A stretch of DNA of 64,000 nucleotides. It comes from Phallusia mammillata (Eukaryota). The stretch covers positions 13,392,001-13,456,000 of the forward strand of contig OZ281499.1 of the NCBI GenBank assembly GCA_965637545.1, in the 5' to 3' direction. A program made the translations under genes and the position numbers. The notes beneath the pieces are model-generated. The model did not search any database, was not told the DNA's origin, and saw nothing but the letters and a program-made list of their open reading frames with translations. Positions within the stretch are counted from its first letter, which is position 1; every line of letters begins with the position of its first letter. This document shows, in pieces, positions 29,141 through 55,697 of this stretch.

Positions 29141-29577
29141 CAGGGGTTCCCAACCGGTGGTACGCGTAGTGGTACGCGAAGGTTTTTCAAGTGGTACGCG
29201 AGTAGCTTCCGTTTTTTCACAAAAACCTGGATTCACAACTTTATATTTTGTTTATCTGGTTTTGTTTACAATTTTTTTCCTGATCCCTATTGTTACTGTT
29301 ACGTAACTATTCCTGTTGTTTCGTATCATTACGATCTTCAAAATACAGGTCATGTCAATTTTTAACAAGAAGCACAGTTGCTTTGAAAAGCCGTGCAACG
29401 CTGTGGGACAGTGGGCGTTAATTTTGTCAAATGATTGCTCTTGATAGATACTGTTTTATAGCTTAAGCTACAAATAGCGTTTGATTCGATCAAATTAGTT
29501 GTTCTGCAGGAAGTGGTACGCGTGGCAGTACAGAGCGTCCAAGTGGTACGAGATCGTAAAAAGGTTGGGAACCCCTG
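29141..29577. mobile_element. hAT MITE inserted in the RT domain of L1 copy 1
   Basis: 15-bp perfect TIR CAGGGGTTCCCAACC; 8-bp TSD GTTTAGGG. Confidence 0.95.
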
Positions 29578-32500: not shown

Positions 32501-32614
32501 TTAGGAATGTGTGCTTGTAGTAATTTCCCCATCCATATGTTTCGAAAATATGAATGAGATGCCTCTCGTTTATGGGGCGCCGTTTGTAAAAATATTTGTT
32601 GTCATTTCCATTCA

Positions 32615-32982
32615 GATTTACCTAAATCAAAACGGAAATGCCATTCCGCTTTAGTTAAATCAGAACGGGAATAACATTTTCATTCCGATTTAGCTAAATC
32701 AGAATGGGAATGTCATTCCGATTTAGCTAAATCAGAACGGGAATAACATTTTCATTCCGATTTAGCTAAATCAGAACGGGAATGCCATTCCGATTTAGCT
32801 AAATCAGAACGAGAGTCACATTTTCATTCCGATTTAGCTATATCAGAAAGGGAATGCCATTCCAATTTAGCTAAATCAGAACAGAAATAACATTTCCATT
32901 CCGATTTAACTAAATCAGAACGGAAATGCCATTACGATTTAGCTAAATCAGAACGGGAATGCCATTCCGATTTAGCACTGAA
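32615..32982 (+). repeat. Left subterminal array of palindrome GATTTAGCTAAATC (~11 copies, mostly alternating 33/39-bp spacing)
   Basis: Palindrome starts at 32615, 32648, 32687, 32720, 32759, 32792, 32831, 32864, 32903, 32936 and 32969 (partial). Confidence 0.9.
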
Positions 32983-33229
32983 CCATGACGAACTAAGTGA
33001 TGGACCGAACCATTATAATCAACAGGGTGTTGGGGCTTAAATTACATGCTACGTTTCTGATTTCGTTCAGAAATCAGCTGTTCATTGACAACTGTACCAT
33101 TTTATAAAAAATATAACCAAACAGGTTAGGACTGATAGTGACAAATACGGTTAAACATCAGCAATGCAGCGAACGAACGGCGTGAAAAATCTCGGTTCCA
33201 AAACCAGAAAAAAAATATTTTTATGTGAA

Positions 33230-36200: not shown

Positions 36201-36481
36201 TTAGCATACAACACATGACTTGTGTTTTGACTTTCATTTCAGATGGGGAATCCTTATGTTCAATAAAAGAAATTTTAATATTTGCAACTGGGGCAGATCA
36301 AGTGCCTCCTCTTGGTTTTTCTCCAACTCCATCCATTGAGTTCTCGAACGAGTCTATGTACCCTTTGGCAAACACTTGTGCGAACATATTGACTGTACCC
36401 ACAAGATACAGCAAGTATGAAAACTTCAAAGAAGCAATGGATTTTGCAATCCTGAATTCCCCCGGATTTGGTGTTGCTTAA
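33230..36481 (+). CDS. Multi-exon UIM + G2E3-type HECT ubiquitin-ligase-like gene inside the transposon; exon structure approximate, integrity uncertain
   Basis: UIM-like DEDTLIQEAIEASLLE. HECT motifs VKFSDDIGQSEGAVDAGGPTREF, SIIHGGPAPRFF, LIFATGADQVPPLGF and PLANTCAN (catalytic Cys), ending NSPGFGVA*. Confidence 0.75.
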
Positions 36482-36690
36482 CTGAAATATAACACAAATC
36501 TACCCTGATATTTTGGATCCTTTGAAATGGCTAGTTGGGTGTTCTTTTGTTTTTGATCTTTTTTAGCCAGTGCTTTTCTGGTCACTACCTGGATTTAAAC
36601 CCGAAATAAATGACATCTTGCTGGCACATTTTTGTATTGTTTTCAAAACATGCAAATCAAAAAACTGTTACATTAGTTCATGCATCAAAT

Positions 36691-37906
36691 TTACACTACC
36701 AAAGCATTGTGTTGTGTCCGGATTAAATATTCCAACGTTTTATTGACTGCATTTTTATACAAAATAATTCCATCTAGATTAGAGTTTTGCTGCAATAGGT
36801 CCTGTAGCTCACTCACACATTCATGTGGTAAATGGGGAATAGCGTCTACTTCAACAGAACTTGTACCTGGGCATACAATATCCTCACTATCTATTTTACC
36901 AGTATCGTTTAAAGTTTGCAGTTGAAGTAAATGTAAGTTAAGATGAAACAACTGTTCAGGAGTGCAATTTTTTTCAGTGGAAAGACTGTGCTTGTTCCAA
37001 GCATTAACAAACTCCTGGATTCGCTTATTAATGATGTGGCAAAACACAAAATGTAAACAAAACAAATCTGTATCATTTGTTGGGTCAAGCAAATTACTTT
37101 CTTCAAGAAAGAAAAAGTCATTGTAAAATTTATTTACAACTTGTGTGTTTATATCACGGTTGAACCTTTCAATGCGCTGGTTATGGACAGAGCTTCCAGT
37201 AATAACTGCATGATAGTTCTGATGCTTTTCTAGCATGTAATTCCACACTTGCACATTTTCTCCTCCATAGTCGGATCGAACATGTAATGGTAAACCATAT
37301 TTTGCTTCAGCTTCCTTAAACAATTTTAACACTACAGATGATCTGTTATTGGTTGAACAGTGGCAGAATGTAATGAGACGACTAAAGCCATCCATAGCTG
37401 CATGTATGACAAATTTCCATCTTATGAGCTTATGTGTTCCATCTATGTGCCAAATATAATTAGGACACGGAACAGTGTAGGTCCTTCTGCTTATTGTAGT
37501 CAGCTGTCTTGCATGGATCCCCTCGCCATCAACTCGGTGAAGACTCTGACGCAATCTTTTTCTTTGGATACGTATACCCTGTGATTGAAGATGACCCTTC
37601 ATCATTGCCTCTCCAGCTGCTGGGTGGTTTTGTTTTATGTTGCGGACTACATCATCCAACTCATTATTGGTCAACGAACTGCAAAATAAATACCCGACCT
37701 TGAGAAAATGTACTTTTTGAACCTGTGTATACACATTGATCAGATACAGTATACTCATTTAGAACCAAAACAAAGTTCATGATATACCTGTACTGATTAA
37801 TATCCACATCGTTTTCTCTCATAACCCTTTTTAGGGTTGGTCGGGAAATTTCCAAGATTTTTGTAATTGAGACTTTAAGTTGCAAAAGTTCCAACAACCT
37901 GTCCAT
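36691..37906 (-). CDS. Integrase-core DDE transposase (IS3EU-like) with an N-terminal HTH exon
   Basis: WHIDGTHKL, MDGFSR, VRSDYGGEN and HNQRIERFN; upstream exon ITKILEISRPTLKRVM (37795-37906). Confidence 0.85.
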
Positions 37907-38273
37907 CGGAACTTGCTTTTTTGGCCTTCCCTTGAAGTAGAATAAAGAAAATAAAAAAATGCTCTTGCATGGATGTTACCAAACTAACCATAATAAAATA
38001 CATGCAGGTCCGCCTCTACGACGTCCACGTTCCATATTTCTGGTTTTGGAACCGAGATTATCCACACCGTTCGTTCATTGCATTGCTAATGTTTAACTGT
38101 ATTTACCTCTCCTGACCTAATTGATTGCAATTAAATAATATGTTACAGTTGTCAACTAACAGCAGATTTCTGACCGGTTGCGAATTAGACAAACCCCGAA
38201 ACGTTGCATGTAATTTAAGTCCTTACACCCCGTTGGTTATTATGGTCCGGTCCATCACTCAGTTCGTCATGGT

Positions 38274-38578
38274 TCAGTGCTAAATCGGAATGGCATTCCC
38301 GTTCTGATTTAGCTAAATCGGAATGGCATTCCCGTTCTGATTTAGCTAAATCGGAACGGAAATTTTATTCCTCTTCTGATTTAGCTAAATCGGAATGGCA
38401 TTCCCGTTCTGAAATAGCTAAAACGGAACGGAAATGTTATTCCCGTTCTGATTTAACTAAATCGAAATGAAAATGACATTCCCGTTCTGATATAGCTAAA
38501 TCGGAATGGAACTGTTATTCCCGTTCTGATATAGCTAAATCGGAATGACATTCCCATTCTGATATAGCTAAATCAAAA
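38274..38578 (-). repeat. Right subterminal array, inverted relative to the left (~9 copies)
   Basis: Palindrome starts at 38306, 38339, 38378, 38411, 38450, 38489, 38528 and 38561, plus a half copy at 38279. Confidence 0.9.
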
Positions 38579-39357
38579 TGACGTGGTTCTTTACACATGC
38601 ATATTTTTACAAAGGGCTTCATTATTTGGGCAAAAAAGGCTTTTTAGAAATGTCATTGATATTTTTACAAACGGCGCCCCATACTCGTTAAACTCAAGGG
38701 GGACTGGAAAAAGGGTTATTTTAGTGTTGGGCGGGGGGGGGGGGGTTTCAGCAAGAAGAGAAATTTTGTCGTTTCCATTATTCCCAAAGGTAAGGCCTCT
38801 ATAAAGTCTTTCATAAAGTTTAGTATGTTTCTCTCTGCTTCTCTCGTCGTTTCTAAATGTGATTTTGAAAATCGATTTTTTCGGATTGAGGCATCGCACA
38901 CCCTCAAGCGATTCTTCATAGAAAGGAAGAATCCCGTTGCGGGTAAACAGTGCGATAAAGTCAGCTAGATTGTAGTATTCGTGTGATTTCACAGTAATAT
39001 GAAGAGATCTATCTTCCAAGAGGTGTCGTTCGATGTTTAGGGGCATTTTGGTAGTGGCTTTGAAGGTTGGTTGAGCAGTAGGGATGATTATAGTTTAAAG
39101 GTGGGGGGGCGCACGTTTACAGCAAATTGAAAAAATTACAGGAAAAAAGGGGGAAAGTGGGAGAGTTTTTTAAATATTAACAATACAGAATGGAGTTATG
39201 CAATTTCGATATTAATTGGATAAAAGAAAGTTTATTCGGATATCTTTTTGTTGTTTGATTTAAGTTTTGGGCAGATTTTAATTTTAGGGCGTGGCAGGGG
39301 TGTGGCCTGTTTTGGTTCATACATTTTCGCCTCTGTGCCCGCTGCATTATTCATTCA

Positions 39358-39403
39358 TTGCTCTGAAGAAGCCCTACCGTTCTGGTGGGCGAAACGTCAG
39401 CAA
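39358..39403 (+). ncRNA. Minimal type I hammerhead ribozyme (Penelope-like)
   Basis: TTGCT-CTGAAGA-A-GCCCTACC GTTCT GGTGGGC-GAAAC-GTC-AGCAA; stem I TTGCT/AGCAA, palindromic ACGT stem III. Confidence 0.7.
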
Positions 39404-39469
39404 AAATACAAGTTCGTGTAAACAACAACTAGTATTTTGTTTAGCATTGCACCAGTTGAACGAAATAAT

Positions 39470-42400
39470 TTATTAAAGGTGTTTATATGTTTTATAAATG
39501 TATCATGTAATGTGGAAATTAAGTCACATCGAGTATTTACTATACTGGCTGAACTTCCAGAAGGTAAATATAAGTTAATTATTGCGAATTGTGTTTGACA
39601 AAATTCAAAAGATAACTTTTGTATTTTGTTTTCTGTAATAATTTCATGTTCCAAGTTTATGTCTTTTCCGAAATTTTCTTTAATCAAAATTAAAGTACCA
39701 TCAAGTTGATTTTTCAAGTAAGAGTTATCCCAGAGCGCATTAAAAAGGGGTATCAGATGGTTCTGTTTAATCCAATTTTCAAAAATTGTTTGATGTATTT
39801 TGTGTATTTCTTGTACTAAAAAAATTTCCGAATCTTGTTTAATTAAATGTGATACATAAGCTAATTTATTTGCAAGTCAGTTTGTATTAAATGAGAGTAT
39901 TCTACAACACGAATCAACTGCCATAGTTTAAGAGTTCTTGGAGGATCTTCTTGAGTGCTTCTTGTTCTTCTTCTTTGGTTTCTTCTGAGATGTACTTGAG
40001 CTATTCTTTCTTTTGTTTTTTCTCACTTCAAAGGGATTATCCGGTTCTGAATCTGTGCCTGAAGAGCCATTTTATTTGGTGCCCAGAAAAATTGAAATAA
40101 AATGTAATTTAGGTCTTTAATGTGTTTCTTTAGTGGTGGGAAAGCACGTGCTAAAAATACTATTTTTGGAATTATAAGTGTGTTTATTATAGTTATTTTA
40201 CCAGGTAGTGTTAAATTTCTGTTTGTAAAACGCGTTGTAATGTTTTGGCGTGACTTGTAAATAGTTTCCAATTTTTATGTATAGCCCAGTTTTGTATAGT
40301 ACATGTAATCCCGAGTATTTTTACTTCGCTTTTCAGAAAATTTGGATAAATTTGATTATTTCTGTTCTAAGATTTTGAGAAAATGCTATAATTTCGGTTT
40401 TTTCTTCATTTATTTTTTGTCCGCTGGCTATTGCGTACAAATTCATCTGTGTAAAGATTTCGTTTAGCGAGCAAGTGTTTGTAATGATAAAAGAAGTATC
40501 ATCTGCGTATTGTTGGAATTTCGTTTCGGTCGGTCCTATTTTAATTCCGTTTATTTTTGTGTTCTGTTTTGTGCATGTGATGAGTGTTTCAGTTATAGCA
40601 ACTTACAACAACATCGACAAGCCGCAACCTTGCCGAACACCTCTTAGTATATTTATTTTTTCAGTCAGTTTTCCGTTAACGTTTATTACACTAGTAAGCT
40701 TAATATTTTTACATAAAAATTCTAAAGATAACTTTTATATTTTGTTTTCTGTAATAATTTCACGTTCCAAGTTTATGTCTTTTCCGAAATTTTCTTTAAT
40801 CAAAAATAAAGTACCATCAAATTGATTTTTCAAGTAAGAGTTATCCCAGTGCGCATTAAAAAGGGGTATCAGATGGTTCTTTTTAATCCAATTTTCAAAA
40901 ATTGTTTGATGTATTTTGTGTATTTCTTGTACTAAAAAAATTTCCGAATCTTGTTTAATTAAATGTGATACATAATCTAATTTATTTGCAAGTCCGTTTG
41001 TATTAAATAAGAGTATACAACACGAATCAACTGCCATAGTTTAAGAGTTCTTGGAGGATCTTCTTGAGTGCTTCTTGTTCTTCTTCTTTGGTTTCTTCTG
41101 AGATGTACTTGAGCTAATCTTTCTTTTGTTTTTTCTCACTTCAAAGGGATTATCCGGTTCTGAATCTGTGCCCGAAGAGCTAGCATTTTCATCGTCTGAA
41201 GGGTTTTCTTTGTTTGAGGTTAAAGGTTTCGTTAGAATTGGAGCAGATTTTGTTGCATCTTTTCTTTTAGTCAGTGAAGGGTGAAGCGGAGTTTCATGGT
41301 CTGGGGTTCCATAGCGACAAGAGTCCGAAAGATTGGAATAATCAAGTTTTTTTCTTTGCATTGCCTTGGCCAATGTTGAAGATATTCGAAAGAGATTTGG
41401 AATTTGACTTGGAGAGTGAGCCAGAATTTGGATTGGAAAAGAGAAAGATGTTTGGAGTTGAAGAAGATGCAGCTTCTTCTGGAACCTTTCTTAAGACTTC
41501 TTTGTGTTCTGATGTATTTAGATTTATGTTTTCGTTCAAGATTTTCTTCTGAAGTTTTTCAAACTTTTTGACTTTGGGAAAGAGATTATCCGCTTTCTCT
41601 TTTTGATCAAGACTGCCAATTGGTGTAGACTGCCTTTGTTGTTTGCTCACTTTTGGGCCAAAGTTGATGTGCTGCCTGCTTCTGGTCTTATAGGCGAGGC
41701 GAATTTACAATCTTTGACGTTATGCTCACCATTGCAAATGAAGCAGAGATGTTTCGTCGGGCAATCAGTGGCCCAGTGACCCCGTTCGTGACAATGTTTG
41801 CACGTGGGGCCAAAGGACTCTCCTAGGTGAGTAATTTGCATGTTGTGACCAAAGAGTTTAATATTGCGTGGGACATTGTCTAGTTCTGCATTGTCCAAGA
41901 AGAGATGCATGTAACCATTGCACAACGAAGGAAAGTGTCGGTGTGTTAGGTATCTATGTTGTTTATACTTTCCCCATTCTAGACGAGATGTTACTTCTTC
42001 CCAATGCTCTTCTCCCAGTTCGAGAGGAACTGGGAAGAGAGTAATTTTGGTCAAAGGCTTCGGTGGATGTTCAGATTTAAGAGTAATTTTTTCTTTTAAG
42101 TTCTTTGTGGTAGAGACTTTTGCCGTTTTTAAATTCCTTGTGGAGCTCTCCGAGGCGTTTTACATCGCGCTCGGTGAAAGTGATTTTGAATAAAGGAAGT
42201 CTGCGGTTTATGCAACGAATTCCCTGCAGTGCGTCCTGGTATTTCTTAAAGGGCCCATATGACATGAAGAAACTGATAAAATTGTTTATGTAGCAGTTTT
42301 CCGATGACGTAACTTTAAAGTGAAGGGACCTGTTTTCTTCTATAAAACGGTTTAAAGCGAGATAATGTTCCATATTTTTTTTACAATATTACAATGCGGA

Positions 42401-42722
42401 AACAACGATGTTAATGTTTCAAGATGATTCGAAAAATGCGTTATAAGTCAGATTTTTTTGTGTTTGTTGGTTGCAAGGTGCGGCTTGTCGTTTGTGGCAG
42501 CGATCGACGTGGAGCACGTCACAAGTTTGGACTAAGACAAGGTATTGGTAATTCGCCCACACAGACTAATTAACCAATCAGTGACGTCACGAGGGAAAAA
42601 ACCCAGGGGCTCTCTGGCTCTTTAGCCGGAGAGGGAGCCTGGAGAAGGTCTTGCACACAAAAAGGAAAGGCGCTCTCGATTCTATTGAAGTCCGGTATAT
42701 GCTTACCTTATTCAAATAGAAT
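39470..42722 (-). mobile_element. L1/Tx1-clade retrotransposon, copy 2 (rearranged, 3' end missing) with an SL-exon 5' end
   Basis: Frameshifted ORF1 (42373-41041; CKHCHERGHWATDC). EN start at 41037, deletion into RT (GVRQGCGLS), ~460-bp duplication (39599-40060 vs 40716-41172). SL exon at 42707-42722. Confidence 0.8.
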
Positions 42723-42781
42723 CCAACCAACCGTCCGCAGCTTTAGGGAACCGATTTGAAATGATTAAAGTCGAAAAAATA

Positions 42782-44484
42782 TTTTTTTTTTCAAAATCAA
42801 ACATTTTATTTGCAACAAAAAGTCAGCTAGCTCAACCCACCAAACAAAATCGGTTTTCTGCAACGACTGTACACTTTGCACACAAAAACACATCTTAAAC
42901 CTACAACATATCATGTCCAGTGAATATTGGCAGTGGACTATTTTGTTATTCAAGGATGGTATGCAAAAAAATCTTAAAAGAGTACCAACAAAAACATTTT
43001 GAATCGAACAAAAGGAACTAGGCAGTGGATTGTGAAGTTAAACTACATCTTCAACGCCAAGTTGGATCTCAACGTCATTTCAAGTTCACTTTCGGAGGTG
43101 TCTGGATCATTATCTATCACCACTGGGTGGGGTGTGTCGGGATTCATTTCCGTAGAGTTGACATCATTCATGCCTAAAATGTTCCTTGCAAATTCGATAG
43201 TTGCGACTTGTAACCCGAGACAAACACCAAGATATGGTTTTTGATTTTCTCTTGCCCATTTTGCTGCGGCAATTTTTCCTTCAACACCTCGATTTCCAAA
43301 TCCACCAGGGACCAAGATACCATTAGCTATGCAGATTTTTTTCCAAGCCTCACGGTATGACACTGGATCATTCACCACAGTTTCTTTCTCCAAATGTGTT
43401 GCCTCAATTATAGCTAAATCTAATCTTCTGTTCACTGCCAATGCTGCGTGCCTTAGAGCTTTAATGACCGACGCATAAGAATCTTCAAGTCTTGTGTATT
43501 TTCCTACCAGGGCAATTGTGCATTTCTTTTGGATTCTATCATATTTATCTGCAAGGTTTTTCCACTTCGTAAGAAGAAATCTTGTTGGATAAGTTGGCAA
43601 GCTCAAACGTTTCTTTAAATACGTTGATAGATTTTGTGCTTCCAGAACTGATGGAACATGGTATATCGAACTGACGTCATAAACATTGATCACCTGTTCA
43701 GGAGCTACATGACAAAAATTGGAAACTTTGTCTTTAACGGACATTTCGATTGGTGAGACGCTTCTACAAACAATAAGATCAGGAAATAAAGCAAGACCTC
43801 GTAAAGCTCGGACACTGTGTTGTGTCGGTTTCGTTTTCTGTTCTCCAGTTGCACTCGGCTGTGAAACGAGGCTGACATGAATGTTGCAGAAGTTTTCTGA
43901 TTTCACTCTGAATTGGAATTGACGAAACGCTTCCACAAAAGGCATCCCCTCAATGTCTCTTATCGTTCCACCCAACTCGATTATACAAACTTCCGGGGGT
44001 TCTTGATCACCGCTTACTGGAATCTTGGCGACTCGCTCCACCCATTCCATAATTGCGTCAGTAACATGGGGAACAACTTGTACAGTTTTTCCAAGGTAGC
44101 CCCCCTTTCTTTCTTTGCTGATGACATGTTGATAATTTTTTCCGGTTTGGATGTTGTTATCTTTGTGAAGCGTAACATTCAGAAATCGTTCATAATTTCC
44201 GAGATCCAAATCCACATCTCCGCCATAATCACACATAAATACATCACCATGTTCATATGGTGAAAACGTTCCCGCGTCGATATTTAAATAGGGATATATT
44301 TTAATGGCTGTGACACGAAGGCACATAATTTCAAAATTGTTCCCAAACTGCTTGAAATAACACCTTTTCCTATGCCACTTATAACACCACCAAAAACTAA
44401 AATGTATTTCATATTTTCAGAATCAGATTGCTTGGCATTCATAATGTTCTGTACTAAATGACAAATACCTCATTCAAATAGAAT
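42782..44484 (-). pseudogene. CTPS: Processed CTP synthase retrocopy of an SL-trans-spliced mRNA
   Basis: [17 protein letters not shown] (ATG at 44412), [42 protein letters not shown]. Intronless. SL (15/16 match) at 44469-44484, AATAAA at 42805-42810, A10 tail, 17-bp TSD GATTAAAGTCGAAAAAA. 1-bp frameshift near 44320 and an apparent internal deletion after PVVID. Confidence 0.95.
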
Positions 44485-44531
44485 GATTAAAGTCGAAAAA
44501 AAGTAACACCGATGATTAAAGTCGAAAAAAG

Positions 44532-44580
44532 TAACACCGAAGTGTTGAAATCGTGAAATCTTATCTTATTCAAATAGAAT
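44532..44580 (-). ncRNA. SL RNA gene copy with mutated splice donor (GT>AT)
   Basis: SL exon at 44565-44580 followed by ATAAG instead of GTAAG. Confidence 0.8.
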
Positions 44581-45096
44581 ACTGTTATAAGGTAACAGGC
44601 GGCTACCTGAAGGCCGTACATGCTTTATTTCAAGACACGGGATATTTTTACGAGTGAAATGGCAAGAAAAAATCCCCAGTCAGTCGGTGTCGCGCATGAT
44701 ATGTCCACTAGAGCAAAGTAGTGGCCAAAACAATGTGATACTAACTTTGTGCAGTGCTACTGTAACATTGTGGCGTGTTTTCCAATTGCGCAGACCTGTT
44801 CATGGTGACTTTATTCGAAGCATTGCAGGCACATAGGTGTGGTAGCCACCCGGTAATTACCGGGTTGGCTGCGGCGCGACTTGCTGGGGCCAGCAGGTCT
44901 GGCATAATTAGCCGACCAGTCCGTGCTGCTGTGCGCTTCAGCTCAACTTCTGCACCTCGAGGAGCCTCATTGGCGCCCCCACGACTTTGTGTAAGGCCCA
45001 GCAACACTTCTAATGGGTAATAATAATAAAAAAACCAACCAACCAACCGTCCGCAGCGTTAGGGAACCGATTTGAAATAATTAAAGTCGAAAAAAG

Positions 45097-45145
45097 TAAC
45101 ACCGAAGTGTTGAAATCGTGAAATCTTACCTTATTCAAATAGAAT
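45097..45145 (-). ncRNA. Spliced-leader (SL) RNA gene
   Basis: 16-nt Ciona-type SL exon + GTAAG donor + terminal hairpin AACAC-TTCG-GTGTT. The ~49-nt 3' end is inferred. Confidence 0.88.
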
Positions 45146-45190
45146 ACTGTTATAAGGTAACAGGCGGCTACCTGAAGACCGTACATGCTT

Positions 45191-45208
45191 TATTTCAAGA
45201 CACGGGAT
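45191..45208 (-). promoter_or_regulatory. snRNA-type proximal sequence element (PSE) of the SL gene, present in every unit
   Basis: ATCCCGTGTCTTGAAATA at -63 to -46, resembling vertebrate U2/U6 PSEs (CCGTG-N-CTTGAAA). No TATA at -30, consistent with a Pol II snRNA promoter. Confidence 0.65.
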
Positions 45209-45673
45209 ATTTTTACGAGTGAAATGGCAAGAAAAAAATCCCCAGTCAGTCGGTGTCGCGCATGATATGTCCACTAGAGCAAAGTAGTGGCCAAAACAAT
45301 GTGATACTAACTTTGTGCAGTGCTACTGTAAAATTGTGGCGTGTTTTCCAATTGCGCAGACCTGTTCATTTTGAGTTTATTCGAAGCATTGCAGGCACAT
45401 AGGTGTGGTAGCCACCCGGTAATTACCGGATTGGCTCCGGCGCGACTTGCTGGGGCCAGCAGGTCTGGCATAATTACCGAACCTAATTAGCCGATCAGCC
45501 CTTGCAGTTGTGCGCTTCAGCTCAACTTCTGGATCACGGGGAGCCTCATTGGCGCCCCCACGGCTTTGTGTAAGGCCCAGCAACACTTCTAATGGGTAAT
45601 AAAAAAACAAACCTACCAACCAACCGTCCGCAGCTTTAGGGAACCGATTTAAAATGATTAAAGTAGAAAAAAG

Positions 45674-45721
45674 TAACACCGAGTGTTGAAATCGTGAAAT
45701 CTTACCTTATTCAAATAGAAT
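45674..45721 (-). ncRNA. SL RNA gene (1-nt deletion in the UUCG loop)
   Basis: SL exon at 45706-45721 with GTAAG; hairpin reads AACACTCGGTGTT. Confidence 0.85.
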
Positions 45722-46247
45722 ACTGTTATAAGGTAACAGGCGGCTACCTGAAGCCCGTACATGCTTCATTTCAAGACACGGGTTATTTTTACGAGTGAAA
45801 TGGCAAGAAAAAATCCCCAGTCAGTCGGTGTCGCGCATGATATGTCCACTAGAGCAAAGTAGTGGCCAAAACAATGTGATACTAACTTTGTGCAGTGCTA
45901 CTAGAACATTGTGGCGTGTTTTCCACTTGCGCAGACCTGTTCATGGTGACTTTATCCGGAGCATTGCAAGCACATAGGTGTGGTAGCCACCCGGTAATTA
46001 CCGGGTTGGCTCAGGCGCGACTTGCTGGGGCCTGCAGGTCTGGCATAATTACCGAACATAATTAGCCGACCAGTCCGTGCAGCTGTGCGCTTCAGCTCAA
46101 CTCACCACGGGGAGCCTCATTGGCGCCCCCACGACTTTGTGTGAGGCCCAGCAACACTTCTAATGGGTAATAAAAAAAAACCAACCAACCGTCCGCAGCG
46201 TTAGGGAACCGATTTGAAATAATTAAAGTCGAAAAAAGTAACACCTT

Positions 46248-46278
<31 letters not shown>

Positions 46279-46881
46279 ATTGTAGAGGCACCTCCCCGCC
46301 TCAACAAGTGACGACCGACCGACAAAAACGGTGATATTTACTATTGTCGTCTCCTCATTAAAAATAAATTAAAATGCAGGCAGGCGGCAACAGCACGTGT
46401 ACTTAAAAGTTCAACGAAAAAAAGGAAAACAGGCTTGGCAACGAGAAAAAAAACGCGAAGGACAAGCATCGCACGTCGCGAACGGGATATGATTGCTATT
46501 GTCAACTAAGGGATTTCATATAAATTAATTTCATTTTTAAACAGGCAGGTGTAATAGTAATTTCAACTGTTGCCGCATTGAAAAAAAAAACATCACGAAA
46601 ATGTCAGATAGGACAGACATCGCACGTCGCGAATAGGGTAACTAATTGGTAATAACAACTAAGAGGTTTCATTTAACTAAAAGACATTTTTGGCAGGCAG
46701 GTATAGTACGCATTTCAGTTGTTACCACAAGAACAAACATAACATTGCAAGAAAACATATCATTGCGAGTGGAAAACTCTACGTGGCTGTTTGAGGTGCG
46801 TGGATTTTTAAAGTTTTAAGCCGAATTTTTGTTCTATTTCTGTTTCACCAAATTTCTGTTCAAAGTAATTTAAGTCCTTTT

Positions 46882-49800
46882 TTAAAAGAACAAAAATTTT
46901 TGCTGCAAATTCTTTGCGAAAGCGGCTTTATTGGCTAGGTATGAGTTGAGAAACTCGAGTTTTTGTTTTATTATTTGCAGACGCCAAATTGCAGTAGTTT
47001 TTATTACTAGTAACGATGTTTCCGAATCGAAGTGATTGTACAATTTGAGATTTGCAGAAGGATCGAATGGAGTTTGGAATTCTTTGAGGAACAGATCATT
47101 TAGGTAAGTTATGATTAAGTTCGGAATTGGGCAATTTGTAAGTAGGTGTTCAACATTGTCGTTGCGATTTTTGCAAAAATTACAGTATAGTTTACGGGGA
47201 TCACCATTTCTTAACCGCAAGAGTCCTGTTTGTCTATAAAAATCTCCCCATTTAAAAGCCTTATGGATGCTTAGGTAAGTGTATTGTCGTTCAAAATTAT
47301 TGAAAAAATATCTTATCTCCTTTTTCAGGAGTAAAGCATTTTTCCAACTGAAATCGGTGATGTGTGATGGCGTGCTATCTATTTCTATCGTTTTAATGAG
47401 CTCATAATAAAAGTGTCTGAGTTTTGCCTTTTGCCAATTGAAGTCATTGTTCTGTTCGATAAGATTTAAGTACGTAGCGTAGATTTTTTGCCAGTCTCTA
47501 TTGGGTTTCCATGCATGGGGTTTTAGGTTATCAAAAAACGTTGGTTTTATCTGTTTTAGCTTTGTACCTAGATTATATCTTGCCCATGCTTGCCAAATTT
47601 CGGTTATGTGTTCTGTTTTCAAAAAATCACGTATTTTTTCAAGATAGATTGCGTCAAGTTTTGTTTCCAGGTGTGGGACTTTAAGGCCGCCTTTTTGTAA
47701 GGTCGAAATGAGTTTCCGTCGGTTTAGTTGTTCGATCTTTCGCGGATGCCAAAAAAATTGGAAAATGATATATTTTAGTTGTTTGATATGGGCTGGGAAA
47801 GGTTTAACTGCACGTGCGAAAAAAAGAATTTTGGGATAAATTAGGGTATTAATTATGGCAATTTTTCCGGTAAAAGATAGTTTACGCGAGGAAAAGGTAG
47901 ATGTTATGTGTTTCGATTGTCTAATTACTGGATTCCAATTTTCATTGTGATCAAAGTTGTTGTTTTTGCATTTTACACCTAGTATTTTTGCACAGGTTTT
48001 AATATAGTCCGGGTATATATGCGTTAGGTCTGTTTGGAGGTTGCGTGAAATAGTAATGATTTCAGTCTTTTCCTGATTGATTTTCTGTCCGCTTGCATTT
48101 TGATACCGTTTCATTAAGTTAAAAATTGTACAGAGGGATTCTTTATTCGAAATTAGGAAGGTAGAGTCGTCTGCGTATTGTTGGATTTTTGTTTGTATGG
48201 TGCCGATTTTTAAACCGCTTATGTTAGTGTTTTTGTTTATTGCACATATCAGTGATTCAGCAACTGCCACGTAGAGTAACATTGACAGACCGCATCCCTG
48301 TCGTACACCTCTGATTATTTTTATTGGTTCTGTTAATTTTCCATTCACATTTACAGTGCTATTTATGTCGTTGTATAGAATTTTGATCCATTTTATCGTG
48401 TATTCATTTATTTTTAAATTTTCCATAATTTTGAACATAAAATCGTGGTCTATCGTATCGAAGGCCTTTTCAATGTCAACCATTACAAGCGCAAGTGGGG
48501 ACTGTTTTTCTTTACTATATTCTATTGCGGTTTTGATGTTGTAGTGAATGTGTTGGATGTATCTCTTATCGAGACCACATTTTTGTTCAATTGACAATTT
48601 TTCATTTAATTCATTCTGGAGGCGACGTGCAACGGTTTTACTGATAATTTTGTAGTCTGCATTAAGCAGCGATATTGGTCTCCAGTTTTTTATCAAGGTC
48701 TTATCTTTCTTTTTGGGGATAAGCTTAACTAACGCGTTCCGTAGCGATGTGGGTAGTTTTTGTGCCATGAAAATGTTATAAACTAGCTCAATGAAGTGCT
48801 CTTTTAAAGTTTGCCAAAAATGTAGATAAAATTCTACAGGGAGGCCATCGTTTCCGGGGGAAGAGTTTTTATTCATTTGGTTTTTGGACAATTCTAGTTC
48901 CTGGAGTGTTATTGGGGCGTCAATTGGGTTAGAGGGGTATGATTTCATTTGGGATACAAAGAAATTTTGGTCAGTATCATTTGTGATGTTTGGTTTCTGC
49001 CATAAGTCTGAGTAGAAAAGATGAACGTCGCCTAAGATTTTGTCTGCGTCGGTTTCAAGTTGATTATTTATTTTGAGCGAACGAATACTACAGCTTTCTT
49101 GTTTATGAGCCTCTATACTAAAAAAGGCTTTGTCAGGTTTTTCGTCGTCGCATTGGTCTTTTATTCTGGCTCGGATCTTAGCACCATGAAGGGTCGATTC
49201 GGTATTTGTTTTAAGCTTTTTTTGCAACTCCAATAGTTTAATGTTTACGTCTAGGTTTTGGGGGTCCATTTGCGCCATAATATCCTCAAACTGTTTTTGG
49301 GTTCTCGCTAGATCGCGTCTTTCAAGTTTTTTTAGATTAACCGCAAAGGTAATGGATTTTTTTCTGATTTTTCTTTTTAGAGTTTCCCACCATTCAGGGA
49401 CGGACGGGTAGTGCTCTTTTTCAGCTTCGAAGTCAAGAATTAGTTTTTTTATAAGCGCATTGTATTCGGGATTTGCTAAAAGCGCAAGATTCAATTTCCA
49501 TTGCGGTTTACCCCATCGTTTTCTTTTATCAAGGTTTAGACAAATGGTTGGTGCGAAGTTGTGATCGGAGAGCAAGGAGTGTTTATGGTTAGCGGAAATT
49601 AGTTGATGAAGCCTATTTATATTACAGTAAATCCGGTCAATTCTAGTTGAGGAACGCGCCGTGATTCGCGTATATATTTTTTTATTTGGTGCGAAAAAAC
49701 GGAAACAGTCTACGAAACCGTATCGTGTAGTCGCTTCAACCCATTGTTTAGCGTCGCAAGCTTTGTTAAAATTGGGATTTAGAGTATCCAACTGAGTTTC

Positions 49801-50271
49801 TACAAAATTAAAGTCTCCACCTATGATTTGGCAGTAGTTTCGGTTATTTGCTAAGGTTTCTGTAATTGCGTTTAAGAGAGTGGTTCTATTTTTCAAATTT
49901 TTTGCGCCAGAGGGGAGGTATACATTGCAGATTATATAGTTTAGGTTATTAATTGCAAAGGAGATTGTTTGTATTTTCTGATAGACCAAGATTTTATGTG
50001 TGATGTCGAGGTTGTGCACGAAGGATTTTTTTATAAAAATCAGAGTGCCATCGTCCACATTTTTTGGGGCATCAGCGCTGTCATTTCGCCAGATTGAATT
50101 AAAATAGAAATCGAAATTGTTGTTTTGAGCCCATAGCGTGAAAAGGTTTTGGTCAATTTGATGTATTTCTTGGAGCAATACTATGTCCGAGTCATCTGTT
50201 TTTAAGAATGCAGATAAGTCGTTCAGTTTGTGTGCAAGTCCATTAATGTTTATTGAGATAATGTGTAACAT
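46882..50271 (-). CDS. ORF2: APE endonuclease + reverse transcriptase + C-terminal CCHC, 1129 aa
   Basis: LLQEIH, GGDFN, RIDRIY, LSDH; WRPISLLNADYK, DIEKAFD, GVRQGCGLS, QYADD; CNFC...EHLLTNC. Confidence 0.95.
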   Translation of the reverse strand: MLHIISININGLAHKLNDLSAFLKTDDSDIVLLQEIHQIDQNLFTLWAQNNNFDFYFNSIWRNDSADAPKNVDDGTLIFIKKSFVHNLDITHKILVYQKIQTISFAINNLNYIICNVYLPSGAKNLKNRTTLLNAITETLANNRNYCQIIGGDFNFVETQLDTLNPNFNKACDAKQWVEATTRYGFVDCFRFFAPNKKIYTRITARSSTRIDRIYCNINRLHQLISANHKHSLLSDHNFAPTICLNLDKRKRWGKPQWKLNLALLANPEYNALIKKLILDFEAEKEHYPSVPEWWETLKRKIRKKSITFAVNLKKLERRDLARTQKQFEDIMAQMDPQNLDVNIKLLELQKKLKTNTESTLHGAKIRARIKDQCDDEKPDKAFFSIEAHKQESCSIRSLKINNQLETDADKILGDVHLFYSDLWQKPNITNDTDQNFFVSQMKSYPSNPIDAPITLQELELSKNQMNKNSSPGNDGLPVEFYLHFWQTLKEHFIELVYNIFMAQKLPTSLRNALVKLIPKKKDKTLIKNWRPISLLNADYKIISKTVARRLQNELNEKLSIEQKCGLDKRYIQHIHYNIKTAIEYSKEKQSPLALVMVDIEKAFDTIDHDFMFKIMENLKINEYTIKWIKILYNDINSTVNVNGKLTEPIKIIRGVRQGCGLSMLLYVAVAESLICAINKNTNISGLKIGTIQTKIQQYADDSTFLISNKESLCTIFNLMKRYQNASGQKINQEKTEIITISRNLQTDLTHIYPDYIKTCAKILGVKCKNNNFDHNENWNPVIRQSKHITSTFSSRKLSFTGKIAIINTLIYPKILFFARAVKPFPAHIKQLKYIIFQFFWHPRKIEQLNRRKLISTLQKGGLKVPHLETKLDAIYLEKIRDFLKTEHITEIWQAWARYNLGTKLKQIKPTFFDNLKPHAWKPNRDWQKIYATYLNLIEQNNDFNWQKAKLRHFYYELIKTIEIDSTPSHITDFSWKNALLLKKEIRYFFNNFERQYTYLSIHKAFKWGDFYRQTGLLRLRNGDPRKLYCNFCKNRNDNVEHLLTNCPIPNLIITYLNDLFLKEFQTPFDPSANLKLYNHFDSETSLLVIKTTAIWRLQIIKQKLEFLNSYLANKAAFAKNLQQKFLFF

Positions 50272-50274
50272 TGT

Positions 50275-51828
50275 TTAGTTAGTGCTTCTTTCTTCTTCTT
50301 GTGACTTGTTCTTCTTCTTTGGTCTTTTCTTTCCGGAGCTTGAGTTTCTTCTTTTCTTTTCTTTTTGTTGTGGTACAAAGAGCTCGTCTAGCTCTTTCTC
50401 GTTACTTCCTACTGTTTTTTCATTGGTTAAAGAATCTTCGTCGAGGGAAGAAGACTCGTCAGCCGTGAAGCTTATTCTTTTGGAAACAAGTTTGACCTTG
50501 CTGGTTATGTGCATCTGGGTGTCAGGGTGTTTTTTGGTTGGATAAGAAGGTGTAGAGGGTTTTGCCGAGTTTTTAATTGGAGATGCCGGTGTGCCATAGG
50601 TCGAGTTTGAGGATTTTGTAGAGGAGAGAAAATCAATTTGTTTGGGGTCCAACTCTGATTTATCCTCTGTTGAGAGCGAGAGTTTTCCAAAGTCTTGAGA
50701 AAGATTTGGAGAAGAGAGTTTTTCCATAGATTCGTCAGGAGGAAATTTTGAAGTCTGGGAACGAACTGGTGTGGAGGGTTTATCTTTAGGTACCTCGGGG
50801 GGAGGGTTTGCCGTCTGGGCACGGTTTGGAGTAGAAGTTTTGTCATCTGGTTCATCAGTGACCATATTTGAAGTCTGTGGACGATTTGTCGTTGTGTCCT
50901 TGGGCTCCTCACTATTTCTGTGAGAAGGTTGGCTAGATGCAAGATTTACTTCTGGGCTATCTTCAATAGGGATTGATTGATTAAGCTTGTCTCGTTTTTC
51001 TTCTTGTATTTCGATTTGCCTTATAAGAGGAGAGAGGTCATCAGGAGTAGTCCGGGGGTCCGGTTTGTCTTTTGGGGTAGATTTCTTAGGGCCCTTTGTT
51101 AGTTTCGGAAAGTTCCTGTCATACTCTTCGTCCGAGGACGATTCACCGTGAGAGGAAGAGATTGATGATCCATAGGGACAATTCTTTGCAAAGTGCCCTT
51201 GCTCTCCACAGATACGGCATTTGAGTTTTCTTGGGCACTGGTTAGCCCAGTGTCCCCTTTGGTTACATGTATTACACGCAGGTCCAAAGGTTTCACCGGG
51301 CTTGGCTATTTGTATGTCATGGCCATACATTTTTACCGTTAGAGGTATGTTGTCTAACTCTACTTCTTCCAAGAAAAGGTGGACATAGCCGTTTAAGATG
51401 TGAGGATACTGTCTATAGGTGAGAAAAGTATGTTTGTTGTAGATTCCCCATTCAAGAATTGATGCTGCAGTGGTAAAGTGTTTTGTTTTAAATTCGGCCG
51501 GGACCGGAAAGAGAGTCAGACGTGTCAAAGGTTTTGGTGGAGTAAAGCTCTGGAGTATAATCGTGTCATCACCATAGGTCCAGCAAAAACTGTTCTTCAG
51601 TTTGCGGTGCAAGAGTGTCAAATCGTGTGTGTGGTTCTCAAAGAAAGATATTTTGTAGATAGATCTGGGTCGGTTGATTACACGGCAGGCTTCTAACATG
51701 TCTTTATATTTTTCTAAAGGAAATCCTTTTTCGAAGAGATTCATGAAGGCATCAAACTTGTAGTAATCCGCTGTTGTGATTTGAATATGGAGAGACCGAT
51801 ATTCAAGCATGTACTTGTCGAAAGGCAT
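50275..51828 (-). CDS. ORF1 gag-like protein with two CCHC zinc knuckles (517 aa from the likely ATG)
   Basis: CNTCNQRGHWANQC and CRICGEQGHFAKNC; low-complexity S/P/T tail and basic C-terminus. Homologous to ORF1 of copies 1 and 2. Confidence 0.88.
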   Translation of the reverse strand: MPFDKYMLEYRSLHIQITTADYYKFDAFMNLFEKGFPLEKYKDMLEACRVINRPRSIYKISFFENHTHDLTLLHRKLKNSFCWTYGDDTIILQSFTPPKPLTRLTLFPVPAEFKTKHFTTAASILEWGIYNKHTFLTYRQYPHILNGYVHLFLEEVELDNIPLTVKMYGHDIQIAKPGETFGPACNTCNQRGHWANQCPRKLKCRICGEQGHFAKNCPYGSSISSSHGESSSDEEYDRNFPKLTKGPKKSTPKDKPDPRTTPDDLSPLIRQIEIQEEKRDKLNQSIPIEDSPEVNLASSQPSHRNSEEPKDTTTNRPQTSNMVTDEPDDKTSTPNRAQTANPPPEVPKDKPSTPVRSQTSKFPPDESMEKLSSPNLSQDFGKLSLSTEDKSELDPKQIDFLSSTKSSNSTYGTPASPIKNSAKPSTPSYPTKKHPDTQMHITSKVKLVSKRISFTADESSSLDEDSLTNEKTVGSNEKELDELFVPQQKEKKRRNSSSGKKRPKKKNKSQEEERSTN

Positions 51829-53378
51829 AGTGAACGATGTATGTAAGCAGATGACTCGGAGAAATAGAAGATAAGCAGAAGTGGAACCTACAGGGATGCG
51901 GTCTGGTAAGTACGGACGAGAAGGAAATTGAAAGGTACTGTTGTAAATCTGAATTAAATTATTTTTTTGATTTCTATGTTTTGGCTGTTTAGGGGAAGTC
52001 CCTTGACTGTTGTCGCAAAACAGGGAGTTTCCCGAAAGAAAGGCCAGAGAACAGATGGACAAAGGGGAATACCCTTTTACTTGCCGAAGACAAAGGGGAA
52101 CTCCCTCCACGAAAACAAGATCTTGGGGGGGACGAAGAGTAGAGCAGCAAGACCAATTAAGCACGAAGACAAATGCGCTTAATTGGTCGGTAAGGGGGGA
52201 AGTCCCAGAGAGCACCTCAGGCACGGGCCTAGGAGGTGGTCAGTGGGGCTTTCCCTAACACACACAAAAAAAGAACAAAGGTACAACTAGCGAAACGCCG
52301 CCGTCGCAGCTCTTATAAGAAAAGCGTAAACAGGGACGTGGCGCTAGGGGGCAAACAAAAAAAGAAAACAAAATGGCGCTACAAAGGTTTAAGACGTGTT
52401 AGATTACCAAGAATTACAACCAAAGGTCACTAGAGGGCCTTACGGGCCAGAAGAGGGCGTTACCCGGTTTGAGGCCTTAAGGGCAAAAAGTTACAGCAGA
52501 AAAGCCTTAGAGGCTCTTAAGTCAGGTTACTAGTTAGTTTTTACCACCAGAGGACCTTTGAGATCCGGTTATAGTTAATTTCAAATTACAGTTACCAGTT
52601 TACAAGAGAACTAAGGTTTATTGGTTACACGGTTAGAAAAAAAGGTATAATAAAACAAACAAACAACAGCCCTGCAAGCGCCTTTGCGCACTTACTGTAC
52701 AAAAAACAAAGTAAATAACACTGCCTGCCTGAAACAACTAAGGGTGAAACGCACCGATAAACATGCAAGAGTAAAACCACACCAAGCAACGTGCAATGCT
52801 TTCCGATTCTATTGAAGTCGGGTATGATGCTTACCTTATTCAAATAGAATACTGTTATAAGGTAACAGGCGGCTACCTGAAGACCGTACATGCTTTATTT
52901 CAAGACACGGGATATTTTTACGAGTGAAATGGCAAGAAAAACATCCCCAGTCAGTTGATGTCGCGCATGATATGTCCACTAGAGCAAAGTAGTGGCCAAA
53001 ACAATGTGATACTAACTTTGTGCAGTGCTACTAGAACATTGTGGCGTGTTTTCCACTTGCGCAGACCTGTTCATGGTGACTTTATCCGGAGCATTGCAAG
53101 CACACAGGTGTGGTAGCCACCCGGTAATTACCGGGTTGGCTCAGCCGCGACTTGCTGGGGCCTGCAGGTCTGGCATAATTACCGAACATAATTAGCCGAC
53201 CAGTCCGTGCAGCTGTGCGCTTCAGCTCAACTTCTGCACCACGGGGAGCCTCATTGGCGCCCCCACGACTTTGTGTGAGGCCCAGCAACACTTCTAATGG
53301 GTAATAAAAAAAAAAACCAACCAACCAACCGTCCGCAGCGTTAGGGAACCGATTTGAAATAATTAAAGTCGAAAAAAG

Positions 53379-53427
53379 TAACACCGAAGTGTTGAAATCG
53401 TGAAATCTTACCTTATTCAAATAGAAT
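53379..53427 (-). ncRNA. SL RNA gene
   Basis: SL exon at 53412-53427 + GTAAG + UUCG hairpin. Confidence 0.88.
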
Positions 53428-53952
53428 ACTGTTATAAGGTAACAGGCGGCTACCTGAAGCCCGTACATGCTTCATTTCAAGACACGGGTTATTTTTACGA
53501 GTGAAATGGCAAGAAAAAATCCCCAGTCAGTCGGTGTCGCGCATGATATGTCCACTAGAGCAAAGTAGTGGCCAAAACAATGTGATACTAACTTTGTGCA
53601 GTGCTACTAGAACATTGTGGCGTGTTTTCCACTTGCGCAGACCTGTTCACGGTGACTTTATCCGGAGCATTGCAAGCACATAGGTGTGGTAGCCACCCGG
53701 TAATTACCGGATTGGCTCCGGCGCGACTTGCTGGGGCCTGCAGGTCTGGCATAATTACCGAACATAATTAGCCGACCAGTCCGTGCAGCTGTGCGCTTCA
53801 GCTCAACTTCTGCACCACGGGGAGCCTCATTGGCGCCCCCACGACTTTGTGTGAGGCCCAGCAACACTTCTAATGGGTAATAAAAAAAAACCAACCAACC
53901 AACCGTCCGCAGCGTTAGGGAACCGATTTGAAATAATTAAAGTCGAAAAAAG

Positions 53953-54001
53953 TAACACCGAAGTGTTGAAATCGTGAAATCTTACCTTATTCAAATAGAA
54001 T
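53953..54001 (-). ncRNA. SL RNA gene
   Basis: SL exon at 53986-54001 + GTAAG + UUCG hairpin. Confidence 0.88.
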
Positions 54002-54528
54002 ACTGTTATAAGGTAACAGGCGGCTACCTGAAGACCGTACATGCTTTATTTCAAGACACGGGATATTTTTACGAGTGAAATGGCAAGAAAAACATCCCAA
54101 GTCAGTTGATGTCGCGCATGATATGTCCACTAGAGCAAAGTAGTGGCCAAAACAATGTGATACTAACTTTGTGCAGTGCTACTGTAACATTGTGGCGTGT
54201 TTTCCAATTGCGCAGACCTGTTCATTTTGAGTTTATTCGAAGCATTGCAGGCACATAGGTGTGGTAGCCACCCGGTAATTACCGGATTGGCTCCGGCGCG
54301 ACTTGCTGGGGCCAGCAGGTCTGGCATAATTACCGAACCTAATTAGCCGATCAGCCCTTGCAGCTGTGCGCTTCAGCTCAACTTCTGGATCACGGGGAGC
54401 CTCATTGGCGCCCCCACGACTTTGTGTGAGGCCCAGCAACACTTCTAATGGGTAATAAAAAAAAAACCAACCAACCAACCGTCCGCAGCGTTAGGGAACC
54501 GATTTGAAATAATTGAAGTCGAAAAAAG

Positions 54529-54577
54529 TAACACCGAAGTGTTGAAATCGTGAAATCTTACCTTATTCAAATAGAAT
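54529..54577 (-). ncRNA. SL RNA gene
   Basis: SL exon at 54562-54577 + GTAAG + UUCG hairpin. Confidence 0.88.
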
Positions 54578-55697
54578 ACTGTTATAAGGTAACAGGCGGC
54601 TACCTGGAGACCGTACATGCTTTATTTCAAGACACGGGATATTTTTACGAGTGAAATGGCAAGAAAAACATCCCCAGTCAGTTGATGTCGCGCATGATAT
54701 GTCCACTAGAGCAAAGTAGTGGCCAAAACAATGTGATACTAACTTTGTGCAGTGCTACTGTAACATTGTGGCGTGTTTTCCAATTGCGCAGACCTGTTCA
54801 TTTTGAGTTTATTTGAAGCATTGCAGGCACATAGGTGTGGTAGCCACCCGGTAATTACCGGATTGGCTCCGGCGCGACTTGCTGGGGCCAGCAGGTCTGG
54901 CATAATTACCGAACCTAATTAGCCGATCAGCCCTTGCAGCTGTGCGCTTCAGCTCAACTTCTGGATCACGGGGAGCCTCATTGGCGCCCCCACGGCTTTG
55001 TGTAAGGCCCAGCAACACTTCTAATGGGTAATAAAAAAACAAACCTACCAACCAACCGTCCGCAGCGTTAGGCAACCGATTTGAAATAATTAAAGTCGAA
55101 AAAAAGTAACACCGAAGTGGCATCTTTTGTTTATTGTAACGCCAATAAACGAAGCGATACGAAAAACTCAATGCGATAATAAAAACAAACAACGAAATCA
55201 TCAGGCCGATGAATTTCGGGCACGTCACGCCTGACAACGCGGTGCCGTTACCCCTCGGGGTTGGTCAATAAGAGAAGAAGAAAGTCAGGGCCATTACTCC
55301 CCGCCTTGGCGGATATGCTTGGGCCCTGCGAGAAGCGGCGCGAAGTGAAAAGAAAAAGGTAAAGACGTCACGAGTACCCGACATAGAAATCGTAGTACGA
55401 ATAACGAAAAATAAAACACGCACGCACGAACGAATATAAAAAACAAAAAAAAATGACGTCACCGGTACACGACATAAAAATCGTAGTACAAGAGACACGC
55501 ACGAGAAAATAGAGAGCGAAACAAACAAGGGTCACGTGAAGCACGCAAGAAAACAAAAACGGTTGAGAATTGTAAGGCAAAAAGACAGGGTCTTCGCTCC
55601 CCGCCGACGACGGGTATGCATTGACCCTGGGAGAAGGGCGAAGAGGGAAGGTAGAAAGGAGCATTGCATACACTACCGATCTCAAACATTAATTTTA

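Follow-up and report, generated by a model that had tools for sequence, protein, structure and literature searches.

The closest described counterparts of the element presented here are retrotransposons devoid of long terminal repeats (non-LTR elements), or long interspersed nuclear elements (LINEs), residing in repeated host genes. LINEs of spliced-leader (SL) exons are restriction-like-endonuclease elements of trypanosomatids (SLACS, CZAR, CRE1/2) and nematodes (NeSL-1), and SLACS is reportedly transcribed from the start of the SL gene that it interrupts. The R2 and R1 elements of ribosomal DNA depend on transcription of the host gene and form 5' junctions aided by upstream target homology in their transcript, R2 being co-transcribed with 28S ribosomal RNA (rRNA) and released by a ribozyme. 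SL exons are listed among LINE targets (PMC4640811, PMC8869645), and the Tx1 group of LINEs, to which Tx1L also belongs, includes elements targeting U2 small nuclear RNA (snRNA) genes (Keno), 5S rRNA genes (Mutsu) and microsatellites (Kibi/Koshi) (Kojima and Fujiwara 2004, summarised in PMC4494074 and PMC3706591); the target of Dewa is a tRNA-Leu spacer (PMC3706591). Host genes may also provide the 5' end of mobile elements, as in SINEU, whose heads derive from snRNA genes and which are mobilised by Tx1-Mar, and in MAST2-SVA, a case of 5' transduction (PMC4494074). We compare with these systems a 6.6-kb full-length non-LTR element lying inside an SL RNA gene of the ascidian Phallusia mammillata, on the minus strand at 46246-52850 of a window of 64,000 nucleotides (C6:13392001-13456000 of the 240-Mb assembly); coordinates given below without a sequence name are window positions.

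This element likely belongs to a non-LTR retrotransposon group with an apurinic/apyrimidinic endonuclease (APE) that is specialised in SL RNA genes and propagates through a cycle in which an SL-derived 5' head and the host gene promoter would be fused anew at each insertion. Members of the group are specific for the 3' half of the SL gene, inherit an SL head, and rebuild a seamless junction between this head and the upstream SL region. SL RNA genes have been known as a niche solely for restriction-like-endonuclease LINEs, in trypanosomes and nematodes, and the present case is that of an APE lineage in a chordate. Like SLACS, CZAR, CRE1/2 and NeSL-1, these LINEs reside in arrays of SL RNA genes and share the orientation of the gene; unlike them, they encode an APE at the N-terminus of open reading frame 2 (ORF2) instead of a restriction-like endonuclease C-terminal to the reverse transcriptase (RT), and their junctions lie downstream of the 16-nt exon, at +36 to +51 in the intron-like part of the gene, instead of inside the SL exon. 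A Pfam search found no second nuclease domain in the element besides the N-terminal APE. With Tx1-group LINEs they share an APE endonuclease and an RT, CCHC knuckles in ORF1 and same-orientation insertion into multicopy small-RNA genes, and they differ by their target (the SL RNA gene), by a target-derived, inherited head and by a 5' junction that restores the start site. A placement in the L1/Tx1 group, which is part of the favoured explanation, would be founded on domain features common to L1 and Tx1: the N-terminal APE, RT and C-terminal CCHC of Tx1 elements are all present, and are non-discriminating since the L1 clade shares them, and sequence-specific insertion into a repeated target, another Tx1 trait, is also observed. 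In the literature searched, no APE-type LINE is described from SL genes, and no LINE of SL genes from tunicates.

Read on the minus strand, the element is made of SL nt 1-21, a leader of about 1 kb, ORF1, ORF2, a 3' untranslated region (UTR) and a poly(A) tail. The SL head (52850-52830; nt +1 to +21) comprises the 16-nt exon (ATTCTATTTGAATAAG) and GTAAG, and is contiguous with the upstream region of the SL gene (52851-52950), a putative promoter in which the 40 nt preceding +1 are identical at 39-40 of 40 positions to the same stretch of intact SL units. The leader (51829-52829), whose first 8 nt (CATCATAC) correspond to a class-3 SL gene (one of the SL gene classes described below) continued to +29, is followed by ORF1 (50275-51828; 517 aa when read from its first ATG, bearing two CCHC zinc knuckles, in an open frame that extends to 52239) and by ORF2 (46882-50271; 1129 aa), in which an APE-type endonuclease (motifs QE, GDFN and SDH), an RT (YADD) and a C-terminal CCHC are recognised. 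Pfam assigns Exo_endo_phos and RVT_1 to ORF2, and its endonuclease domain matches ExoIII-family structures in the PDB. At the end of the 600-nt 3' UTR (46282-46881) stands a hairpin motif, GAGGC...GCCTC (46282-46303), that the families have in common and that also has 21-nt variants missed by a fixed-length pattern; the UTR is followed by AAT and the poly(A) tail (46246-46281), the tail reading A18-G-A14 (46246-46278).

At the 3' junction, this tail abuts GGTGTTACTTTTTT, i.e., SL nt +43 onward, and the sequence reads on as GGTGTTACTTTTTTCGAC; comparison with intact neighbour genes (ATTCTATTTGAATAAGGTAAGATTTCACGATTTCAACACTTCGGTGTTAC...) identifies G43 as the last loop base of an ACAC-UUCG-GUGU hairpin. 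What remains of the interrupted gene from G43 onward (3' arm of the hairpin, T run and downstream sequence) lies at 46170-46245. At the 5' junction, ATTCTATTTGAATAAG and GTAAG run straight into element sequence CATCATACCCGAC..., the element start being read as CATCATACCCGACTTCAATAGAATCGG. SL nt +22 to +42 are missing, nothing is duplicated and there is no target site duplication (TSD); the crossover cannot be placed within nt 1-21 of this copy, because target and element both carry them. The original prediction is thus borne out as to a full-length 6.6-kb element with ORF1 and ORF2 open (the 517- and 1129-aa frames with their domains), a poly(A) joined to SL +43 inside the UUCG loop, and a 5' end placed after the SL exon and GTAAG, with +22 to +42 lost and no TSD.

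Some further features concern the coding region and the 3' end. ORF1 and ORF2 share a frame in family A, that of the focal element, with a single stop codon between them (50272-50277) and the ORF2 ATG one codon further on, and this frame relation differs in family B1. In the focal 3' UTR, a segment of about 145 bp is directly repeated, at 46459-46601 and 46610-46755, with 72% identity between the two; the final 47 nt or so of this UTR, with the terminal hairpin, have dozens of dispersed genome matches at 91-95% identity, which could be short interspersed nuclear elements (SINEs) or other families sharing this tail.

The host DNA is an array of 575-bp tandem SL units (44512-46245 and 52830-55119), and the window contains the 21-nt SL string 8 times, versus 0 expected by chance; no Rfam model reached threshold on the SL units, nor did Rfam detect a 5S gene in the window. 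C6 carries at least 150 intact SL genes of this 575 class on the same strand, and the C3 region harbors two further SL gene classes in units of about 553-555 bp, class 2 (GTAAGCATCAGCACATC...) and class 3 (GTAAGCATCATACTCCTCGGAGTAAC...). About 40 nt upstream of the gene are conserved across the three classes, the remaining unit being about 71% identical. A search with the RT region retrieved relatives at 60-99% identity, concentrated in C6:13.43-13.68 Mb and C3:11.09-11.29 Mb; about one-tenth of the assembled SL units in the region are interrupted, which is of relevance to annotation.

Among the copies that match the RT region of the focal element at 60% identity or more, 16 of 23 sit in SL arrays, and all 16 have a downstream junction with SL-unit DNA at SL +35 to +53. 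All full-length copies in arrays pass without a seam from the upstream region into SL +1, and none of the examined copies has a tandem structure with a second head placed behind SL 1-42 of the target. The distribution is neither random with respect to SL units, an outcome that could have refuted the original prediction, nor that of an ordinary L1-like element dispersed regardless of gene. That prediction, an SL-targeted family in a chordate, stands as regards specificity for SL genes and has to be amended as regards a single family, at least five being present, and a single +42/43 site, as the position varies.

These related families (A, B1, B2, E and C, at least) insert in three SL gene classes on two chromosomes, and their preferred site is +36/37, +42-44 or the start of the T run, depending on the family. 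Family A (the window copy and L001) has a head made of SL 1-21 and CATCATACC, and its poly(A) joins GGTGTTAC (+42/43). In family B1, the head reads GTAAGCATATACCTGAC in both classes occupied, and poly(A) joins CACTTCGG (+36/37) in the 575 class (L004, L007), and TTTTTTCGACTC, at the T-run start, in class 2 (L005, L006, L011). Family B2 carries the head GCAAGCATCTG in L009, with a junction at +36/37, and in L008 (class 3), where poly(A) joins GAGTAAC; an older copy, 96% identical (L010), has the head GTAAGCATCTG and a junction at +43/44. The family E copy L018 (class 2; head GTAAGCATCATACTGC) joins the T-run start. Finally, the five copies of family C (L013 to L017) begin with a 50-nt head corresponding to 575-class SL 1-50 with its own substitutions, T45A in 5/5 copies and G46A in 2/5 (L016, L017); L015-L017 have their 3' junction at +50/51, and in L013 and L014, devoid of their own 3' end, SL-unit DNA resumes at about +47. 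Family C, which lies at C6:13.46-13.57 Mb, is otherwise family E minus the leader and ORF1, and its long head, copied from a 575-class SL gene, appears to be a head replacement that has itself been propagated.

Is the SL head a part of the target or of the element? Past +21, families A and E, as well as L019, have a head reading CATCATAC, of which B1 and L012 have close variants, and this sequence is that of a class-3 SL gene to +29 or +30, not that of the 575 class housing the focal copy. The recent B2 copies L003, L008 and L009 have GCAAG at +17 to +21, and the older L010 has GTAAG; because these three copies share GCAAG, their crossover with the target must have occurred upstream of +18. 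Three full-length copies outside the arrays have SL +1 or +2 at their start and carry flanking TSDs of 6-12 bp: GGTGTT(A) for L003, GGGTGAGTTT for L012, and TGTATGTCAGAA for L019, with 12 extra nt before the head. A family A copy truncated at its 5' end (L002) is likewise inserted outside the arrays, with a TSD of 13 bp (ATTACTGTTTCTT). The off-array copies, together with the family-specific head variants, show that the head belongs to the element and is inherited, and indicate that source RNAs began at SL +1. They support the earlier claim that the RNA of the element carries an SL head; described at first as the SL exon and GTAAG, this head does include these nucleotides, and its limit moves from 21 nt to about +29, into sequence from another SL class.

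The leader also contains a motif, CTTCAATAGAAT (52806-52829; also found in the heads of L007, L012 and L019), that is complementary to SL nt 1-12 and has variants in other families retaining the pairing through G-U. The recent B2 copies (L003, L008, L009) are without this motif and have their splice donor changed to GC; the older L010 is also without it, and keeps GT. The fold-back of the leader on the SL is not the minimum-energy fold (z-score -1.6).

In the proposed cycle, the element RNA would start at SL +1 with its inherited head (exon, GTAAG and a few nt from another SL class), the endonuclease would nick an SL gene on its bottom strand, within the 3' half (for family A, between C42 and G43), and reverse transcription would proceed to the RNA 5' end. 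The SL-complementary end of the cDNA would then be joined by homology to the target's own exon, with loss of the stretch from exon to nick. The outcome would be a seamless promoter-SL(1-21)-element fusion in which +22 to +42 are gone and no TSD is formed, the new copy being again located behind an SL gene start site, without the downstream part of the SL RNA. We infer that the upstream SL promoter drives transcription of the element, that 5' joining is directed by homology between the head-complementary cDNA and the target exon, and that the endonuclease sets the specificity of insertion. With a segment of the target serving as its 5' end, such an element would rebuild at each insertion the fusion to the start site of the host gene. 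R2 and R1 are alike in the dependence on host transcription and the homology-aided 5' junctions proposed here, and unlike R2, the RNA of the focal element would start at +1 of the host gene, keeping 21-29 host-derived nt as a permanent head. SINEU and MAST2-SVA similarly have a 5' end originating from an RNA polymerase II small-RNA gene or an upstream host promoter region; SINEU are non-autonomous, with an unexplained transcription, whereas the focal element is an autonomous LINE in which a head of this kind is combined with homing to the promoter that matches it. It thus provides a natural case for studying the promoter problem of site-specific LINEs, the formation of 5' junctions by homology, and the long coexistence of families in one multicopy gene.

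A related lineage exists in another organism. The best match among 5.8 billion proteins (P0001, ENA assembly ERZ25067582) is 33% identical and colinear over 940 aa, and sits inside an array of 596-bp SL units bearing the same 16-nt SL, with a head made of SL 1-20 and a 3' junction at which poly(A) joins C23; this 596-bp unit was searched for in the P. mammillata genome and is absent from it. A cluster mate, P0139, lies in a second SL class of the same assembly (head GTAAGATTGACG...), and just upstream in that array the A45 tail of another copy joins the SL gene at CGTCTTGC. The best matches of P0001 in P. mammillata are the SL-headed group (33-37% identity), other LINEs reaching 26-28%. In a maximum-likelihood tree from a quick search, rooted at midpoint only, seven SL-headed ORF2s, the two from ERZ25067582 and one from a TARA scaffold form a clade with a long stem and a support of 100 in the Shimodaira-Hasegawa-like approximate likelihood-ratio test (SH-aLRT); no recognisable SL was found on this scaffold (L022), the third member of the clade. 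SL-gene residence looks ancestral to a lineage present in at least two species, as far as this tree and these arrays indicate. At L024:711-760, also in ERZ25067582, a poly(A) is followed by TTGAATAAGGTAAGATTGACG, and therefore one element has inserted into the SL head of the next, at about +7/8.

How far do these data support the SL-head cycle against other explanations? The main rival concerns transcription: an internal promoter, located in the head or in the 1-kb leader, would set initiation at +1, adjacency to the SL upstream region being a by-product of homology joining. LINE internal promoters initiating at +1 are established, and the off-array copies starting at +1/+2 are compatible with one, although what they reveal is limited to the start of the source RNA; the exact promoter-SL junction is restored in every full-length array copy and recent near-identical copies are mostly found in arrays, both of which make this explanation unlikely. 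In three small runs, 21-27 of 30 element bins are covered at 95-100% identity, and the contig depth of the SL-unit bin relative to the element is 1.4-4.5x, versus about 180 in a DNA-like run, ratios that suggest transcription of the element and are silent on its start site. The other source of an SL head would be its fresh addition at each insertion, either because the RT switches template to free SL RNA or because the element RNA is trans-spliced. L1 template switching to snRNAs is known, and has been proposed for the heads of SINEU (PMC4494074), but trans-splicing could not supply the intron nt +17 to +29, a template switch does not agree with a head-body junction fixed in each family nor with the inheritance of GCAAG (recent B2) and T45A (C), and the class-3 head is found even in 575-class arrays. 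Fresh addition is accordingly very improbable; with intron nucleotides included and the head inherited, both origins are rejected for these families.

Several points nevertheless weigh against the SL-head cycle with endonuclease-set specificity as we propose it. The expression data are assembled contigs and not RNA 5' ends, from runs that are only guessed to be RNA, and one contig carries 9 nt upstream of SL +1, which fits equally a break between 31-mer unitigs (an assembly effect), read-through transcription or DNA in the sample. The junction census covers 20 loci plus the window, i.e., part of both arrays, and family A amounts to three copies only, including the off-target L002. Moreover, the nick site differs between the near-identical B2 elements (+36/37 in L009, +43/44 in the older L010), and B1 nicks at +36/37 in one SL class and at the start of the T run in a second; as sites 7-8 nt apart serve near-identical elements, it is unlikely that cleavage requires one strict sequence. 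Would targeting then rely on pairing of the RNA head with SL DNA, or on a tether to the SL transcription complex, with the endonuclease nicking loosely downstream? Nick sites spread from +36 to +51 with proteins that are nearly identical, what the three targeted SL classes have in common is mainly nt 1-21 and the T run, and an array-resident retrocopied mRNA also bears the SL exon. Against this, two off-array sites resemble the SL hairpin arm GGTGTTAC (GGTGTTAAC for L003, GGGTGAGTTT for L012), and families E and C use a conserved TTTTTTCGAC in two classes, which fits recognition of a DNA sequence; we give targeting by head or tether a low probability. A broader version, in which an ancient ascidian lineage of APE LINEs would use its own SL head both to guide integration and to rebuild the promoter fusion at each cycle, is rather improbable too; if true, head-guided integration would be an RNA-assisted mode of homing not described for APE LINEs. 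Lastly, the copies could have spread solely by unequal crossing-over or segmental duplication after one chance insertion, without any target specificity. Shared flank structure does identify clear block duplicates (L013 and L014; L015 to L017; L004 and L007). However, when the 575-class array of C6 is compared with the class-3 array of C3, their B2 copies show 99.9% identity over 6.4 kb and the flanks of these copies 70-72%, and B1 copies are 99.1% identical versus about 72% for their flanks; near-identical elements thus occupy differing SL classes on two chromosomes, in flanks about 71% identical, and their insertions are therefore recent and independent. Tail lengths and junction positions also differ among copies, TSDs surround the off-array copies, a processed pseudogene occupies the same SL site, and another organism has the related lineage in its SL arrays. 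Duplication-only spread is already refuted for the whole group and retains next to no credibility, a conservative count giving at least about 10 separate insertion events in SL genes. The two family A copies are 98.8% identical, with flanks (97.6% upstream, 92.7% downstream) in the ordinary unit-to-unit range.

The group has been active recently and has long been under purifying selection. ORF2 identity between families is 49-63%, with nonsynonymous divergence (dN) of 0.26-0.43 and saturated synonymous divergence (dS), and dN/dS within B2 is 0.11; several old lineages therefore coexist under purifying selection.

Other insertions are found in and near the arrays of the window. A second related element (27083-42722, minus strand) has an SL head (42702-42722) that abuts SL-unit spacer at about +107, not the promoter, and a 3' end (hairpin at 27138, tail to 27083) adjoining non-SL DNA; near 32.6-38.7 kb, a DNA transposon of about 6 kb interrupts this element. 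From 55120 to about 62000, also on the minus strand, lies a member of a distant LINE family with APE, RT and zf-RVT domains, showing about 30% RT identity and an ORF2 broken by a stop. It is without poly(A), its 3' end ...AAAAGATGC joining SL C37, and the family has many copies in both SL array regions; the 5' end of this LINE was not found, nor was that of family D within the window. Lastly, a processed retrocopy of a trans-spliced CTP synthase mRNA (42780-44486, minus strand) is inserted at SL +50/51. It carries the SL exon at its 5' end (one mismatch), a 427-aa frame with CTP_synth_N and GATase domains and an A-rich tail, and is flanked by a TSD of about 23 bp with an extra duplication of SL 42-73; it shows that the elements' machinery also acts in trans, and on the same target.

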